From positions 62,001-126,000 of the forward strand of contig JAANOX010000276.1 of the NCBI GenBank assembly GCA_020184695.1: DNA of 64,000 bases. The letters are read 5' to 3'. A program made the translations under genes and the position numbers. Source of the stretch: Histomonas meleagridis 2922-C6/04-290x. Taxonomy: Eukaryota; Protista; Parabasalia. Positions 2,698-64,000 of this stretch are shown here, one piece after another (position 1 is the stretch's first letter; each line of letters opens with the position of its first letter). Below the pieces are notes generated by a model. That model saw only the letters and a program-made list of their open reading frames with translations, was not told where the DNA came from and made no database searches.

Positions 2698-5663
2698 TCA
2701 ATGATAAGGATTTTGATTTGCATACTCCATTATTTTATTTGCTTCTTCATTTGATATATTCATTCTTGGATCTTTAAATATGTATCTTCCTACATACTTT
2801 AATGAAATTGTACCTCTTGGACCCATATCAGCCATCTGAAAATCAGTCGAATGCACAGGCAAAAATGTGGCATTTGAAAAAAACCTTCTCTTGAAATAAT
2901 TACAAATTCTTTGCTTTTCTTTCTTGAATCCCAATTTATTTACTAGAATTACATGATACATTTTTTGTGATAACATTAGCACATTTAAATTATTTTGGTT
3001 TCGGGGACGTAATGTTAATTGCTGACCTTCAATGAGATCTTTTGGTTTATCACTACCACGTCTAAACAATCTCTCCATTAAATTTGATATTTGGATTCCA
3101 TCAAAGAAATGATTTTCTGTTTCATTGTTATTTGATTTAAATTCAATTCCAGTTAATGCTTGGAAAAGTAATTTTGAATTTTGATGTGGTTGTTCATAAT
3201 ATACCAATAAGGGATATCCTAATTTCTTTAAGCCACCAAAAAATCCAAAGAATGATGATTTAAAGAATGTACTTTCAGATTTTGTTATTAAATTATATTC
3301 CCATAAGTTGGTGTATAATGAGGTATCGATATCAACTTTAACATCTCGATTTGAAACATAATGTTTGTACACATAATTTACACTTAAGCCTGCAACTCCC
3401 AATAAAGCTAAAACACCAGTTCCTCCAAGAACTAATTTTCCAACAGTAGTTAATGCTGGTAAATAAGGAGTAATTAAATGAAAAATCTTTGAACCTAAAA
3501 AAGTAACTACCTCATGAGTAACTTTTCCAAGTTCTATTAATTTTTCAATTGATGATACATATACACCATGTTGAGCTAATACATCTAAACCTTCCAGGAA
3601 TGTTAGTGAATATATATAGGAAATTGATTTTATACCTCCAATCGCAACATTTTCCCCAGTTTCTCCAATTAAACCAACAATAGATGTTCCAATGTCTTGA
3701 ATATTTGATATATTTTCATCAGCATTTCTAATACAATCAATTACGTACTGACGAGCAAATTTGTTCCTTTTTAAAATTGAAAATGCATCCTTCAATATTT
3801 CATGAAAATATTGTTGATAATCGTTCGCAGAGATGTCATCTTCACCAATGACATAAGGTAAAACAACACAAATAACAATACCAATCGTTAAAGACAATTC
3901 TGAAAAAATTTGGCTAATGTTTTCTTGGTTAGCTTCTTTTAATTTATTGTTTATCAATGTGTTAAGATTAGCACAACATGTAGAACAATGTTTTGCCACT
4001 TCACTTGCATTACGTGGTAATATGTTGTTATCATGCGATTTGATTTCATTTCCAAAATCTACAAAAAAATTTTCAAATAACCCCACAGATAAAAGTGCTA
4101 AAGATTGAATCTGATCCTTTGGATGACATAATTTGTCATAACTGATAGATTTTAAGATATGGTATAATGAATAATAAACTGTAATATAAAATGTCACTGG
4201 ATGATTTATTGCATCTCCAATTGGTAAAAATTGAATAAATTCATTGAAATAATGTTCTGATGCAAGTGAATGTTCGTTCATCCAATCTCGTTTCAAATCT
4301 TCAAGTATTGAATTATATTTACTTAATGAATAATCCCCACTTAAATCCCTCATGTTATTATAATCTCGTACAAGAAATATAACTTTTGTCAATGATGAAG
4401 ATGAAAGTTGTGCTCTTCGAATTATTGTTAAAACAGGTTTAATGCTTTCTCCGATATCTTGGATTTTTGAAACAGTAATACAAATTGTTGAAATTGATGA
4501 GAATATTGCATGAATGCGATCAAGGTATCTTGCTCTTGCATCGATCGATCTTTCATCCCCAGTTCCTTGTGCATCAAATAATATTACACAAGTATTTTGA
4601 TTACTATTTGCTGCTTGAATACAAAAGTTTCGAATATCTTGAAATTGAACTGGAATTCTATTTATGAAATCAGAAACTCGGTAAATTCCATCTGCTAATA
4701 AACCTTTCGTTGTCGTATGTATTCCATTTCCGCTTGGAAATCCCATATTACCTGTAAGTGCTTGTAAATATGTTGATTTACCTGTTTGATATAATCCGAT
4801 AAGCATAATTAAAATAATTGGTACATCTCCAACTTGATTATACATTTCTTGAAGCTCATTTATTTTTATAGGTATTTGTGATCCACTATCAGGATTTGTA
4901 TTTTGTTCATTGATTAATTGATATGGGATATTAAAATAAGTTTTAGGCAATATTGATGAACATTTCAATTGTTGTTTATAACAATTAATGGTCTCTTGAT
5001 TTACAACAATATCATCATAACTTTGATTAATCATTTGGTAAACTGTTTCGAATGTTATGTTTGATCTATAATTAATACATATATCTATTAAGTCTCTAAA
5101 AACAAGATTTTGGGGAATTGTACCTGCATATGCATGACCTGAAAATAAATGAAACAAAATTCGCCCAAATGATTTAATATCGTTTTTTTTCATTTTTGTT
5201 GAATTTCTTTGGTTGGTTAAATGCGTAAATGTTGTTCCTGTTATGATTGGCCATTTATTGGAATCCAAATAAATATTTTCCATAATGAGATTGCAATGTG
5301 CATAATTATTTAAATGTAAATATTTCATCCCAGAAGCTACACCAATTGCAATTATAATTTTTTGAACAAGTGATAACGAAGAAAGTGTATTACCATTTAA
5401 TTTATTTTCGTAAAATGGCGTAATAAGAACTGAATGATGACTTGAATCCTGACAAAGGCCAACAGCTTTGATTGAGAAAGATTATTAAGAGCATTGAATG
5501 TGTTAAGAAGATTTCCTTCTGTTACATGTCCATTTGCTTTTTGCATTGAAACGATTTGACCTGTCGAATTAATCATTCCTTTATCGATTCCATTTCCAAT
5601 CCCTCTTCCAACAACAGTAAATGACTTCATTTCGACATGGCGATTTCGATTTGCACTCAACAT
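2698..5663 (-). pseudogene. Pseudokinase + GBP/atlastin-like GTPase fusion with one frameshift at ~5473
   Basis: ORF 5397-5663 carries a kinase N-lobe (GRGIGNG). Shifting frame at 5473/5472 continues IKAVGLCQDSSHHSVLITPFYEN...IAIGVASGMKYLH into ORF 2698-5328, which has a P-loop GLYQTGKS, TTKG and DAQG. Confidence 0.65.
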
Positions 5664-12206: not shown

Positions 12207-13562
12207 TTACATTTCGTCATCTTCCTCTTCTTCACCATCTTCGACTGATTCAGAAGCAACTTCATCATAATCCTTTTCAAGGAGTGCAAGATCTTCACGT
12301 GCTTCAGGGAATTCAGCTTCTTCCATACCTTCACCTACGTACCAATGAACGAAAGCTCTTTTAGCGTACATAAGGTCGAATTTATGGTCGAGTCTACTCC
12401 AAGCCTCAGCGATAGCAGTAGTGTTAGCCAACATGCAAACAGCGCGTTGAACCTTAGCAAGATCACCACCAGGAACAACAGTTGGAGGCTGATAGTTGAT
12501 ACCCATCTTGAAACCAGTTGGGCACCAATCGACGAATTGGATTGTGCGCTTTGTCTTGATTGTAGCTACGGCGGCAGATACATCCTTAGGTACGACATCA
12601 CCACGGTACAATAATGTGCATGCCATATACTTACCGTGACGTGGATCGCATTTAACCATCATATTAGCTGGCTCGAAAAGTGAGTTCGTGATTTCGGCGA
12701 CAGATAATTGTTCGTGATATGCCTTTTCGGCTGAGATGACTGGTGCATATGAACAGATTGGGAAGTGGATACGTGCATATGGAACAAGGTTAGTTTGGAA
12801 TTCGTTGAAATCGACGTTGAGTGCACCATCGAAACGAAGAGATGCAGTAAGGGAAGAAACAACTTGACCAATCAAACGGTTCAAGTTGGTGTAAGTTGGC
12901 CTTTCGATATCTAATGCACGGCGGCAGATATCATAAAGTGCTTCGTTATCGACCATGAATGCGCAATCAGAATGATCAATCATAGCATGGGTGGCGAGGA
13001 TTGAGTTGTATGGCTCGACAACTGCTGTTGATACTTGTGGTGCTGGATAAACTGTGAACTCGAGCTTGGACTTCTTGCCATAATCGACAGAAAGACGCTC
13101 AAGAAGAAGTGAACCAAAACCAGAGCCTGTGCCGCCACCGAAGGAGTGGAAGATAAGGAATCCTTGAAGACCAGTGCATTGGTCAGCGAGTTTACGGATA
13201 CGATCAAGAGTCAGATCGATGATTTCCTTACCAACGGTATAATGACCACGGGCATAGTTATTGGCTGCGTCTTCTTTGCCATTGATGAGTTGATCTGGGT
13301 GGAAAAGTTGACGATATGTACCAGTACGGACTTCATCCATACATGTGGGCTCGAGATCTACAAAGACTGCGCGCGGGACATGTTTGCCTGAGCCCGTTTC
13401 GGAGAAGAAGGTGTTGAAGGCATCATCGCATACACCGATAGTTTTATCGGAGGGCATTTGGCCATCTGGCTGAATGCCGTGCTCAAGGCAGTAGAGTTCC
13501 CAGCATCCGTTACCGATTTGAACGCCGCATTGACCAACATGGATAGAAATAACTTCACGCAT
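12207..13562 (-). CDS. TUBA: Alpha-tubulin
   Basis: [11 protein letters not shown] start, GGGTGSG motif, K40 retained, parabasalid-type [11 protein letters not shown]; Inr-like TCACTT ~12 nt upstream of the ATG. Confidence 0.99.
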
Positions 13563-14278
13563 TATGAAGAATGAAGTGACAGCGAAAAAGATAAACGGAC
13601 AATTATTTGAGAGCTATAATAACGTATTAATTTCAATGAAATAAACGGTTATTGGCCAATGAATTTTTATCGTTTTCAAACGACAAAAAAGTGCGATAAT
13701 TCGAACAGAGTACTGTTAACGTTTGTAAAATAAAATGGGCGGTGCAACGTAGAGGTGTTCTGCAGAAGGAGCTGAAGCACATCTGTTACCCCCGCACATG
13801 GATAACGTTGAATACAAAAGAAGCAAAAATTGCGTGGCGGTTTTATTTAACCAATTTTAACACAAAAACGAAATGTCATGTAAAGACGATAAGTACTCAA
13901 CCGTGCAAATTGTCAGATAAAATGAAAGTTTTTTGGACTTTTAAAACCGTTGTTTGCTTTGAAAATGTTCTCGCTCAAAAACAAGAATAATACAATGCGA
14001 TCATTTATTAGGGCTGAACACTCAAAGCGCAGAAATTTATTTTTATAGATTGTGGTCAATTTTTTGCGGAAAGAGAAATTTTGGTAAAGAATTTCTGGCA
14101 GATGAAAACTATTTTCTCTTCAAATAAAATGGATTTTTAATATAAAAATATTACAAGCTGCTTTTGATATTAAAAAAATTGTTGAGAAATTTAATATTAA
14201 TGCTGTATTTGAACACAAACATTATTTTTTTTCTTCAGCGAACAGCGGTTTTGATCGTCATTTACTTCATTTTTTTGG

Positions 14279-14863
14279 ATGGATGAAGTATCAAAATACA
14301 AAATTGTTCTTACTGGAAGTGCTGACGTCGGTAAAACATCTTTGTTGACTCGTATTACAAAAAATTATTTTTCCAAAACATATAATCCAACTGTTGGAAT
14401 TGGATTTGGATTTTGGGAAACAGTAGTGGAAGGACACACAGTCAGACTGCAAATTTGGGATACTGCAGGAACAGAAAGATATCAATCTATAACTCCAATT
14501 TATTATCAAAATGCAGAAGCAGCACTTATATGTTATTCCTTAAAACAAACAGAAAAAGAATCAGAAGAAGCAGTAAAATTTTGGGTTAAGAAATTTTTAG
14601 ATACTGTACAATCTAAACCAATATTTATTGTAGGAAATAAGAGAGACAAAAATGATACGATATCAGATGAAATGGAGAGGTACCTCAAAGAGCAAGGAAA
14701 ATATAAGTTATACAAAGTGTCTGCTAAAACTGGTGAAGGAGTAATTGATCTTTTCAGCAGTGTAGCTAAAGAGGTTTGGAAAAACTCATTTCCAAAATCC
14801 GAATTTTTGGAACAAAATACGAGGGTTTCTGGTCCTCCGCAAAAAACGAGTTGCTCATGCTGA
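14279..14863 (+). CDS. Rab-family small GTPase
   Basis: GSADVGKT, WDTAGTERY, NKRD, SAK motifs and a C-terminal CSC prenylation motif. Confidence 0.95.
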   Translation: MDEVSKYKIVLTGSADVGKTSLLTRITKNYFSKTYNPTVGIGFGFWETVVEGHTVRLQIWDTAGTERYQSITPIYYQNAEAALICYSLKQTEKESEEAVKFWVKKFLDTVQSKPIFIVGNKRDKNDTISDEMERYLKEQGKYKLYKVSAKTGEGVIDLFSSVAKEVWKNSFPKSEFLEQNTRVSGPPQKTSCSC

Positions 14864-58956: not shown

Positions 58957-59670
58957 TAGGGGGTGGAAAAAGTCTTTGCGTGCGAATTTTTTTATTCAAA
59001 ATAATTAAGTAAATATTTTTTTAATTATTGCTAATTAATGTACTCCCCTTGGTTTTCAATTACCATGAAAAGTCGGTACATCCATTCATTATACACGGAT
59101 TTAAATATATCTTTTTGGTATATTGTATAGCAATTCAGTCACTTTTTCCAAAAGTTCATTTTCATCCTGAAATTCACATCCTTCTAGTAACTTTTTAACA
59201 TACCCAAAGAGAAAAAAGTCCGAAGGAGCTAGATCCGGTGAGTACGGAGGATGATCAAGTCTTTTTATGCCTAAATCATTGAATTTTTGAGCAACCAAAT
59301 GTGGTCTTGCATTATCTAAATGTAAAAAGTATCCTTTTTGTTTCGATTTTTGAGCTAAATCTTCAAGAACAACTTCCGCAAAAAACTCCCTATTAAATTT
59401 TCTATCGAGCGGAAGCATTGTAATTGATTTAATACCTGTTATTCCCCAAATAACAGATATCATTGCTTTTTTCGCTCCAATAGTTTGTTTGACTTTTTGC
59501 GGACAAGGCTGCCCCGATTCTAACCACATTGTATTTCTAGGGTTTACAAAGTATACCCATGTTTCATCTTGTGTAAGAATCATCCTTATCTTTCGCTCGT
59601 TTGCAGTTGGGTACTCTCCAAGCAAAAGGGAAAATTTGAATACCTTCCTCTCAAAAAGTGGAAATGCCTT
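58957..59670 (-). mobile_element. 5'-truncated mariner transposon with one TIR
   Basis: QDETW, HLDNARPH and YSPDLAPSDF motifs. A frameshift in an A5 run near 59112 restores IPKDIFKSVYNEWMYRLFMVIENQGEYIN* ending at 59031. TIR-like TAGGGGGTGGAAAAAGT follows a TA target. Confidence 0.9.
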
Positions 59671-61139
59671 TCAATTATGCGTGATTTTTTGAATAGCATT
59701 GAAAAATTTTCATTCAAAATATTTTTGTGAGAAAATATTCCTTCTCAAATTCGATTTCTATGTTCTACATTTTTTGACATAAAAATTTCTGAAAATTTAT
59801 AAATTGCCATTGTATTTTTTAAATAATTTTAAATTATTCGATATTTTTCAATTTTAATATGACAAATATGCACTGACACGCAACATTCTCAGATATAATA
59901 TATTTATCGAACTCAATATTTATAATGATAATATATATTAAATTCGTTTCCGAAATTCGGTCATAGGTATACTGGGAAGATATAAGAACTAGCCATTAAA
60001 AATACATAATATATGCACATAATTGAGGATATTAATTAATATAAATATGAAATAATATTCATGATAAGTCAAGATAAATTTTTTTTCATTTTTAAAAGTG
60101 ACAAATATCACTTTTGTATGGTTTATTTTCGTCGGTGCGCCGATGGTAAACGATATGACCAATAGATGCAAGATAAATGAGCAATAAATAAACATATTTC
60201 TTGATCAATTCATTGCAAATAAAGTAAAAATTACCCAAAAATATCATTAATCATTATTTGAAATAAAAATATATGAGGAGGGGGGTGGGGGTAAAAAAAG
60301 AACGACCCTTTTATCTCGACTTCTATTCAATAAAAATTATTTTTAAATTATATCATATTTAAATATTCATTATTAAATCTAAATATGTGAGCATTATGTT
60401 CATCATGTCCAAATGCAATTGTTTTCAATCATTAAATTTTCTTTATAGACATTTAGAAATATTGCCAAATTGCATAATTATTGGTAGAGGAATGACATTA
60501 AATTCGATGAAGAAGTTATGTTTATATTAGATATATTAAATATACTATTAGTTAAAAAACCAATTTGTTACACTATCTATTGCATAATTCGAAGAATTGA
60601 GAATTTTTCTCCTGAGTTAGATTAGTTATGGTCATTTGAGTGATATTTGAAACTAATAATTTAGCGTATTTCAGAAAGAAGATTGAAATATTATCAAGTT
60701 TTTTAAGCACAAAATATAATATCTTATATACTCAGTACCAAAAACAAATAAAGATCATGAAACTGGATTCTGCAATATATTTATTAATATATTACCACAT
60801 ATAAGTAAACATGCAAACGAATTAGATAAAACGAGACTAATAATAAGAGTAATTAAAGATTACATTAATATTATATATATTTTTAATATCATAATTTAAA
60901 TTCCATTGAAAACAAAAAATCGGAAGACACAATCAACAATAAAAAAAACGTACATAAATATCTACAACAAAGAACAAACATAAAATATTATATAACGAGT
61001 TAAATATTACTAAAATACATCAGATAATGAGATAACTCATTATTATAATAATTAATACAATGAACAACACATGTGTTGATAATTTAATTTATTATTGTTG
61101 ATGATGCGAAATCATTTATTGTAAGTCATAATAAATCAA

Positions 61140-62781
61140 AAAGATACAACAATTTTATGCAACAAATTATTATCAAAAACCAATTTATCACTGAAATGAT
61201 TCATTAATAAATTATGATTCATTATTGCATTAATGGAATAATCTTCTATTATAATAATTCCAAGAACAGTGAAACTATGGCAATAACAATTCCTGTAATT
61301 GCACTTGGATGAAGCTTTGTACCATTACTATGGCTCAATGGGCATACATCGCTTATTTTGTTACCCTTGGTAACATTGATCTCTGCAAAAGTGCTTTTTA
61401 GAATATTCATTTGTTACATAAATAGTTGGACTATCAAATGTTGTATTATAACACGATGGTTCATTCTTACCATAGAAGCAAACAATTTCAAGACTCATGC
61501 ATGAACTAAAAAGCATAGTTATCTATCACATTAATGTTCTCTGGAATGATAACTTTCTTAATGCTATTGCAATTGATAAATGCGCCTAATCCAATCGTTC
61601 TTACTGAGCTGGGAATATCAATACTAGAAATCAAAGAACAACCTTCAAATGCATATTCTTGGATTGCTAATATGGTTTTTGGAATTACAACATCACCTGA
61701 TTTTCCAGAAGGGCAAAATATTAATTTAGTAATATTTTTGTTATATACAATTCCGTCATTGTTATAATTGGAGTAATATACATTATTTAGTGAGATGGTT
61801 ACAGATACTAAATTTGGACAATTTTGAAATGCAAATAGACCAATTGAAACCACTGAGTCTGGAATATTGACATTGTGGAACAAACATCCATAAAACTGGA
61901 AGTCTTGTAATACTGTGATTGAATTGGGAATACTTAAATTTGTCAACAAAGAACAATTAATGAACGAAAAGACACCAATTGATTTTTTACAGAATTGGGG
62001 ATATTTATATTTGTAATAAGAAAAACAATCCTCAAATGCATAATCTTCAATTAATTGAACAGAACTAGGAATATTAACAATACCTTCTACTACTTAGGGA
62101 CATAATATTACTTTTTGATATGTTTTTTTATCATAAACAATTCCATCATTATTATAATTCGAATAGATTTCATTATTTTCAGAGATTTTAATTGCCTTTA
62201 ATTTTGTGCATGCATCAAATGCAGATTCATTAATTAGGGAAACTGAAGAAGAAATTTCAATTTGCTCTAAATTTAAACACCTATAAAACGCAAATTCTTG
62301 AATTTTTTCAACAGAATCTGGAATTATAACATTTGTTATCTGCCTGCAATCAGAAAAAGAGGAATATCCTATTGATTTTACAGAATTGGGGATATTTATA
62401 TTTGTAATAAGAAAACAATCCTCAAATGCATAATCTTCAATTAATTGAACAGAACTAGGAATATTGACAATACCTTCTACTGCTGATGGACATAATATTA
62501 CTTTTTGATATGTTTTTTTATCATAAACAATTCCATCATTATTATAATTCGAATAGATTTCATTATTTTTCAGAGATTTTAATTGCCTTTAATTTTTGTG
62601 CATGCATCAAATAAAAAGCATGGCTATCAATCACAAATACATTGCTCCCAATTTGCAGTTTTGAAAAATGACCAATGGTTTCAATATCATCTCGTGTAAT
62701 AGTTGAAACATTAAAGACTTTAAGAGTATCATTTTCGAGAATAAAGTTACAGCATGTGAAAATAGGAAGAAGGTAAAACAT
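61140..62781 (-). pseudogene. BspA-like LRR_5 surface protein pseudogene
   Basis: Signal peptide from ATG 62781, many xxIPxSVxxIxxxAFxxC repeats and a TM at ~61250-61310; multiple frameshifts and stops. Confidence 0.85.
61979..62612. repeat. Internal direct duplication (~240 bp): 61979-62220 and 62371-62612
   Basis: Nearly identical blocks differing by four homopolymer-length changes and a few substitutions. Confidence 0.9.
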
Positions 62782-62830
62782 GTATAAAAATAAATGCCAT
62801 CTTTGGCAAATTTAAAATTCAATTGTTCAA

Positions 62831-63228
62831 ATGTTTTTCTTGATCCCTATTATCATTGTTGCCAGACAATCAACAGAAAATAATGAGGAAAACAGTGCTA
62901 AGCCAGGACTTTTAGTTAATGTTAAAGGAGATCTTGATTTCAACGAATTAATAGATCAAATCAGCAAAATAGTAGGTTTCTTGCTAACAGCAAAAAATGA
63001 AATTCCAACAAATGGAGGTGGTAGATTTATTACAGGTGTTGATTCCGGTAATGTTTATGCATTTTTTTTACCATCCGTCAAAGAGACACAGAGTTTCATG
63101 TAGACCAGGACATGGCCAAAGAATTCAACCAAAAGATCCAGTATGGTTTGAGGCAAATGAATGGGCCTATGTTATTCTTAAATCAGCCTGGTATGGAGGT
63201 AATCGATGCTGAGTATGATGATGAATAA
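62831..63228 (+). pseudogene. Lactococcin 972-family bacteriocin-like secreted protein with two +1 indels
   Basis: Joining ORFs 62831-63103 and 62997-63212 at the T8 run (63062-63069) gives GGRFITGVDSGNVYAFFYHPSKRHRVSC...ANEWAYV...GGNRC. One more +1 correction at ~63207-63212 gives YDDE*. Confidence 0.75.
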
Positions 63229-63619
63229 ATCTAGATTAAGTGTAAGAACTTCAATCGATTTATTTAATTTTTAATAATTAAATAATTTTTAAATATATTT
63301 TAAAAAAATTTTTAATATTATTTTATATTATTTAATGTTTTTTTATAATGTTTTATGTTATTACCATATAATAATTTAGCTATTTAAAAAAATATTATTC
63401 GATTTTTGATAAAAATGCCATTTTTGCTAAAAAAAATGCCATTATAATCCAAAATTTCATCAAAATATTTGCATGTAGGAATACAACAGATTATTTTAAA
63501 ATGTATATTGTTGATTGAAAACATGTGTTTTGATCAGAATTATTCTAATATTGAATAAAAAATATTATTTTTTTGATATATTAATTTGGGAATTGTATGA
63601 AAAAATAATATAATGATAG

Positions 63620-64000
63620 CCTAACATAAATTTATGTTATGTACATGCATAAAGCTTCATCAAATTTGTGTATTTTCACTTGTTTATTCATGCTTTTTCA
63701 TATTATCAAATGTTTTATCATGTTCATTCATGTTGTTCTATCTTATCTTGTGCTTATTCATGTTTTTTCTCATTATAAAACTTTTTTTTTTTTTTCTCAT
63801 TTGTATTAATAATTTTTTATGTTTGTTCACATAATTTCATATTTATTCGTGTTATATAATGTTTATAAATTAATTTTGAATGTTATCTCATGATTTTCTA
63901 TGTTATCTCATGTTATATCATATTTATTAATGTTTTTTCATATTATCTCATGATTTAATATGTTGATTCATGTTTATTCATGTTTTTCATTTTTATCTGA
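63620..64000. repeat. Degenerate 10-bp satellite (minus-strand consensus ~ATGARWAAAC), continuing past the window end
   Basis: Units such as atgaataaac, atgagataac, atgaaaaaac and atgatataac in register; roughly 35 units. Confidence 0.8.

Follow-up and report, generated by a model that had tools for sequence, protein, structure and literature searches.

The window analysed here, a 64,000-nucleotide stretch of the genome of the poultry parasite Histomonas meleagridis, contains one copy of a gene related to that of lactococcin 972 (Lcn972), arranged head-to-head with a gene for a BspA-type leucine-rich repeat protein inside the left part of a DNA transposon (Table 1). As assembled, the Lcn972-like gene is divided among three reading frames. 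The ATG at 62831 starts a 90-residue open reading frame on the forward strand (piece 1), MFFLIPIIIVARQ...GGGRFITGVDSGNVYAF, whose fuller start reads MFFLIPIIIVARQSTENNEENSAKPG...GGGRFITGVDSGNVYAF. Past a run of eight T residues, another frame gives FYHPSKRHRVSC...SAWYGGNRC and ends at the TGA of 63210-63212 (piece 2; in full after the T8 run, FYHPSKRHRVSCRPGHGQRIQPKDPVWFEANEWAYVILKSAWYGGNRC), and a third frame adds YDDE, followed by the TAA at 63226-63228. The second of the two breaks consists of an extra A at 63212. Re-reading of all three frames showed that an earlier sequence-only reading of this DNA had described the N-terminus, the pro-region and the two corrections leading to YDDE and the stop codon accurately. 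The GC content of the gene is 0.32-0.36 against a window average of 0.28, a composition that is host-like, as had also been claimed.

Table 1. Features of the Lcn972-like locus and of the surrounding transposon (coordinates of the window)
Feature	Position	Strand	Remarks
Left 4.4 kb of ~11.3-kb Merlin/IS1595-type DNA transposon	59610..64000	+	runs off the window end
Left terminal inverted repeat	59610..59729	+	GGTACTCTCCAAGC...
Mariner/Tc1-type transposase fragment	59101..59609	-	PF01359 27.6 bits, PF13358 25.3 bits
BspA-type LRR gene	61361..62781	-	several ORF pieces in the window; PF13306 LRR_5
Divergent spacer between BspA-type and Lcn972-like genes	62782..62830	.	49 bp between ORF starts
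Lcn972-like gene	62831..63228	+	one copy of a multi-copy H. meleagridis gene; three frames as assembled
Putative signal peptide MFFLIPIIIVA	62831..62863	+	short and hydrophobic; direct reading
Acidic stretch and pro-region	62864..63013	+	motif D.N.L(I/L)DQI..(I/V)G; conservation in alignment A1
Lactococcin_972 domain (residues 62-131 of the intact protein)	63014..63228	+	contains both frame breaks
First frame break	63063..63070	+	T8 run; TTTTATT in six other copies
Second frame break	63210..63216	+	TGAGTAT; TGGTAT in six other copies; makes the in-frame TGA 63210-63212

A search with the 90-residue piece 1 retrieved P0001, a protein of 131 residues annotated in Histomonas meleagridis as 'hypothetical protein', which belongs to a cluster of four sequences (P0001-P0004) represented by 11 accessions from two published assemblies. 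The intact proteins read ...GNVYAFYYHPSKRH...GGNRCWYDDE. The intact paralogues predicted in the sequence-only reading are thus present in both H. meleagridis assemblies and run straight through to ...NRCWYDDE and the stop codon, and its joined version of the protein is the same as theirs apart from one residue, Y in place of the F that it had given. Among the six copies fetched, four (L001-L004) have a coding sequence identical to that of the window except at the two break sites, and one of these, L004, is a short-read Logan contig that carries the intact form. The other two (L005 and L006) show both break-site differences in the same way, together with an extra A in the N-terminal part. It is because of this extra A that three annotated copies, accounting for the two sequences P0002 and P0003, start later; the longer N-terminus of P0004 arises from a different T-run length. 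The stop codon of the intact copies lies within the sequence TAAATC, which we take to resemble the UAAA polyadenylation signal of Trichomonas.

Since the six other copies differ from the window in their coding sequence at exactly both places, the two joins made in the window are not arbitrary. Scored with a family profile from which Histomonas sequences were absent, piece 1 reached 36.6 bits, piece 2 reached 47.3 bits, and the read-through protein with an X at each break reached 94.3 bits over a single continuous stretch of the profile. Taken separately, the two pieces are too short and had no match in searches of Pfam, of PDB sequences and of the ESM Atlas; a search for homologous proteins with the 72-residue domain yielded no candidate with enough words in common. 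Programmed frameshifting at the T8 run was weighed as an alternative and dismissed, since all other copies can be read through without such a run.

The gene encodes a relative of Lcn972, as found by three independent tests. In the first, the Pfam profile PF09683, Lactococcin_972 (InterPro IPR006540), scored 23.0-23.7 bits for P0001-P0004 and 25.5 bits for the isolated domain, so that the Histomonas protein on its own exceeds the curated gathering cut-off of 22 bits by only 1-3.5 bits; the match spans residues 62-122 and profile positions 1-57/58 of 62. This is the profile search that the sequence-only reading had named as a check of its family assignment, and all four proteins lie above the cut-off. 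An exhaustive phmmer search found 28 proteins at E values up to 0.001, the query counted, with most of the matches beginning at query residues 26-38; in this and related searches the nearest relatives of the gene are parabasalid. P0001 was aligned with 19 relatives (alignment A1, 20 sequences), and PF09683 matches 18 of the 20, with a best E value of 9.9e-16.

The second test made use of a profile of this alignment. It retrieves two solved members of the family, namely Lcn972 itself (2lgn_A; residues 2-64 of 66 at E 1.7e-7) and 9hkj_A (E 1.3e-4). P0001 alone, compared by phmmer with the PDB sequences, gave no match, and Lcn972 was reached only by the family profile. All sequences of A1 have histidines at positions 81 and 86 (H81 and H86), which fall on HGSKTH of Lcn972. 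The Y-H-x4-H-S/T-A-T-V and G-x-W-A segments match their counterparts in 2lgn in the same order, and the Lcn972 sequence quoted in the sequence-only reading agrees with the 2lgn chain. The third test was structural: an AlphaFold2 model computed on A1 has pLDDT values above 90 for residues 61-131, and in Foldseek comparisons it matched Lcn972 of Lactococcus (2LGN) with a TM score of 0.80 normalised to the target, an rmsd of 2.4 Å and a probability of 1.00, the top match being Formosin D (9HKJ; E 6.7e-4, probability 1.00, target-normalised TM score 0.62). Profile, alignment and fold agree with the original assignment to the Lcn972 family, and each check named in the sequence-only reading that was carried out spoke in its favour.

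The protist protein and its two solved relatives share the same beta-sandwich fold at an identity of only 14-19%. The protist protein departs from Lcn972 in its eukaryote-style N-terminus and in a pro-region of about 50 residues with a conserved helix, which the AlphaFold2 model places at residues 37-48 with moderate confidence. The N-terminal MFFLIPIIIVA aligns in A1 with similar hydrophobic N-termini of P0007, P0010 and P0011, and the eukaryote-type relatives of the alignment share the conserved pro-region, which is missing from the bacterial-looking P0028. The domain also contains two cysteines, C90 and C126, whereas the printed Lcn972 chain shows none; almost all aligned relatives of P0001 carry other residues at these two positions.

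On the opposite strand, the BspA-type open reading frames of the window match PF13306 (LRR_5) with E values of 1.7e-28 to 1.1e-42. The first of them starts at 62781, which substantiates the 49-bp head-to-head spacing from a BspA gene noted in the sequence-only reading, and the divergent spacing is the same in L001 (starts at 3951 and 4001). In comparison with the other copies, that of the window is without 128 bp at 62613. This deletion affects the BspA-type gene in its 5' part, where the sequence is internally repetitive, 62111-62220 resembling 62501-62612.

Both genes lie within a longer repeated unit. The segment 59610-64000 of the window is 97-99.5% identical to seven fetched loci, in which the shared unit is 10.8-11.36 kb long; over about 11.3 kb the copies agree at 97-99% identity. 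The ends of the element are inverted copies of each other over at least 120 bp, with 112 of 120 positions identical (GGTACTCTCCAA... and ...TTGGAGAGTACC). Perfect 8-bp target duplications, TTCTTTTT, GAAATGAA and CCATCTTG, were found at three sites (L008/L011, L010 and L013), and no matching duplications at L007 and L009/L012, so that two of the five insertions visible at both ends lack them. The duplications present are evidence of movement of the gene by the transposon. The Lcn972-like gene is followed, about 3.3 kb further downstream, by an open reading frame for a transposase (ISXO2-like/IS1595 DDE, DDE_Tnp_IS1595), which in L011, where it is whole (13343-14308, 322 residues), matches PF12762 with an E value of 1.2e-16 and 61.5 bits, the cut-off being 27 bits. 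It is broken in L007 and L009; the fragments in L007 remained below the Pfam threshold, and the whole reading frame of L011 was needed. The other sizeable open reading frames of the element are solely BspA-type pieces and the Lcn972-like gene, and no reading frame for an ABC transporter or of another immunity type was found in it.

The transposase, the long inverted repeats and the 8-bp duplications are those of the Merlin/IS1595 superfamily. The Histomonas element is unusual in its length (11.3 kb), and differs also in its two passenger genes and in long, AT-rich, non-coding stretches that contain short tandem repeats. AT-rich tandem repeats of a 10-nucleotide unit, ATGTTATCTC, and its multiples (20-60 nucleotides) are present at 63835-63988 of the window, in the non-coding part of the transposon downstream of the gene.

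The window includes the left end of its copy, at 59610, but neither the right end nor the transposase gene, both of which lie beyond 64000; the duplication predicted there would be TGCAGTTG. The adjoining mariner-type fragment, which belongs to a flank unique to the window, stops where the 11-kb element starts, the boundary of homology falling at 59607-59610. This suggests that the element of the window is nested inside a mariner-type transposase gene, into which it would have inserted; the remaining half of that gene would then be expected past the right end of the element, outside the window. Judged by their flanking genes, L008 and L011 represent the same site in two strains, as do L009 and L012, while L007, L010, L013 and the window have distinct flanks; the element therefore occupies at least six sites. 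It is quite likely that the bacteriocin gene and the divergent BspA gene travel as cargo of this 11.3-kb transposon, which has multiplied its passengers to these at least six sites of the H. meleagridis genome. If this is true, a eukaryotic mobile element would amplify an antibacterial weapon. That an IS1595-type element also carried the original transfer from bacteria is very improbable and a speculation which nothing here supports.

In order to judge the two frame breaks, the private differences of the window over 59607-63275 were scored against the majority of five other copies. Within these 3.7 kb, 13 private insertions, each of one to three bases, add 16 bases in total, and all but one of them (62116-62118) lengthen A or T runs. 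The private deletions of the copy are the 128 bp at 62613 and two bases in a T run at 63273. Private substitutions form two clusters, at 60610-60681 with a majority of T to G changes and at 60928-60979 with a majority of T to C changes, and such clusters of a single type look like systematic base-calling or polishing errors and not like mutation. According to the 2021 genome paper, both H. meleagridis assemblies are short-read-polished Nanopore drafts from one parental lineage, and only 2 of 21,822 raw indels were accepted as true.

Sister-strain copies of the same insertion provide a further measure of accuracy. For L009 and L012, the unique flanks show no differences in 6,660 and 2,346 bp, and the first 3.9 kb of the element show 59 substitutions and 24 indel events; for L008 and L011, there are 9 differences in 6.6 kb of flank, against 8 substitutions and 28 indel events in the element. 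The disagreement between sister strains inside the element thus amounts to about 2% and consists mostly of indels, whereas the unique flanks are identical or nearly so. Because the sister assemblies differ inside the element and hardly outside it, base accuracy must collapse within the repeat, and two indels in a gene of 398 bp therefore fall within the noise. The extra A of L005 and L006 and the altered T-run length of P0004 are noise of a similar kind. These data argue, with moderate confidence, that the two frame breaks are uncorrected long-read assembly errors.

Alternatively, the copy in the window may be a genuine pseudogene with two frameshifts, its sisters being intact. The given sequence does hold two frame breaks, and the second, an A inserted between G residues, cannot be put down to a homopolymer error; the BspA deletion and the private substitution clusters belong to this copy as well, and the DNA runs contain only 74-77% of the words sampled from the stretch. 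A true pseudogene is nevertheless the less probable explanation, considering that the private differences are mostly insertions lengthening A or T runs, that orthologous sister-strain copies disagree equally inside the element and essentially not outside it, and that short-read polishing is expected to be poor in multi-copy repeats of assemblies built from Nanopore drafts. The gene had earlier been called invisible to ORF callers and this copy possibly dead. Both impressions probably go back to errors made in assembling a multi-copy element rather than to biology. As base accuracy collapses there, the annotated copy number and the apparently 'dead' copies in the public assemblies are unreliable inside this repeat and, more generally, gene models inside multi-copy elements of these assemblies should not be trusted as to frame or copy integrity.

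The family as such, including these Histomonas proteins, has been known since 2025, when laterally acquired AMP-Lcn972 genes were described in Trichomonas and other metamonads (Mol Biol Evol 2025;42(11):msaf276; PMC12612818). That paper lists homologues from T. foetus, H. meleagridis, Hexamita, Monocercomonoides and Streblomastix, and its Table S2 includes the H. meleagridis proteins KAH0788655.1 (P0004) and XP_067770210.1 (P0001), which are intact sisters of the window copy; Histomonas appears there as homology matches. AMP-Lcn972 proteins accordingly belong to the same family and are in part the same proteins as those studied here, with the same architecture, in which a Lac972 domain at the C-terminus may be preceded by a signal peptide; T. 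foetus P0014 and T. vaginalis P0022 are 34% and 36% identical to the Histomonas protein, and P0022 was already labelled 'bacteriocin (lactococcin 972) family' by one source. The two conserved histidines and AlphaFold overlays on 2LGN are likewise given there. Most of the relatives found here are metagenomic proteins, and those with names are already covered by the published tree.

The Lcn972-like peptides were stated in print in 2025 to be the first laterally acquired antimicrobial peptides reported in protists. The idea of a laterally acquired antibacterial peptide, put forward in the sequence-only reading, hence matches the published family and origin, but is not new. What the present analysis adds is the transposon context and a warning about assembly quality inside the element. 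The available text of PMC12612818 contains no mention of the multi-copy state, the transposon context, the BspA pairing or the unannotated copy of the window, and no mention of a transposon-borne cargo of bacteriocin and BspA genes was found in that text or in the available part of the 2021 genome paper.

Taken as a whole, the locus is very likely a copy of a gene for a presumably secreted Lcn972-family protein, carried by a transposon, with breaks that are probably assembly errors. The family entered metamonads from Gram-positive bacteria by lateral transfer. In the predicted protein, a signal-like N-terminus is followed by a pro-region with a conserved helix and, at the C-terminus, by the beta-sandwich domain of the Lcn972 type. 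The short hydrophobic N-terminus would direct its secretion, the pro-region (D.N.L(I/L)DQI..G) may either be cut off or aid folding, and the released domain would bind lipid II in the manner of Lcn972. Action against bacteria would serve a caecal parasite that feeds on and lives among them. Histomonas growth and virulence depend on caecal bacteria, and a lipid II binder, if secreted, could shape the bacteria which Histomonas lives with or eats. More broadly, protists living among bacteria have borrowed bacterial cell-wall weapons. The words sampled from the gene were absent from all RNA runs listed, which does not show that the gene is silent.

The protein might also be a true Lcn972 homologue that has been reused, for surface binding or for self-recognition together with BspA, and that no longer kills. 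Such a change of role would be in keeping with the pro-region, which the eukaryote-type relatives keep and a bacterial-looking member is without, with the existence of arrays of two to five domain units and with the head-to-head position of the gene next to one for a surface protein. It is nonetheless unlikely, given that the core motif, the two invariant histidines and the fold have been kept and that, according to PMC12612818, a T. gallinae homologue is induced by co-culture with bacteria and one of the published genes by E. coli in particular, and E. coli expressing recombinant Trichomonas domains shows growth defects or toxicity. This published toxicity is that of Trichomonas domains expressed inside a Gram-negative bacterium, which is not the classical spectrum of Lcn972, and it is no demonstration of binding to lipid II.

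That the gene comes from a co-cultured bacterium, through contamination or a chimeric assembly, has a negligible probability: Histomonas is grown with bacteria and the 2021 genome paper reports one phage-contaminated chimeric contig, but the same gene, host-like in composition and with parabasalid nearest relatives, is found in both assemblies at a total of no fewer than six places, and the transposon around it is of eukaryotic type and has target duplications. Contamination is ruled out because the intact copies adjoin eukaryotic genes in both assemblies, the flanking genes being Cpn60/TCP1, Rpb1 and Symplekin; the sequence-only reading, too, had argued against it.

Tandem units of pro-region and Lcn972 domain, two to five in number, occur in the metagenomic proteins P0005, P0008, P0013 and P0015. 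The first of these, a protein of 701 residues encoded at L014:760-2865, matches PF09683 with 97.4 bits in five stretches and could represent a polyprotein from which several antibacterial domains are released. Its scaffold is eukaryote-like, the neighbouring genes encoding a GH3 glycosidase, PCI-domain proteasome lid and UCH proteins.
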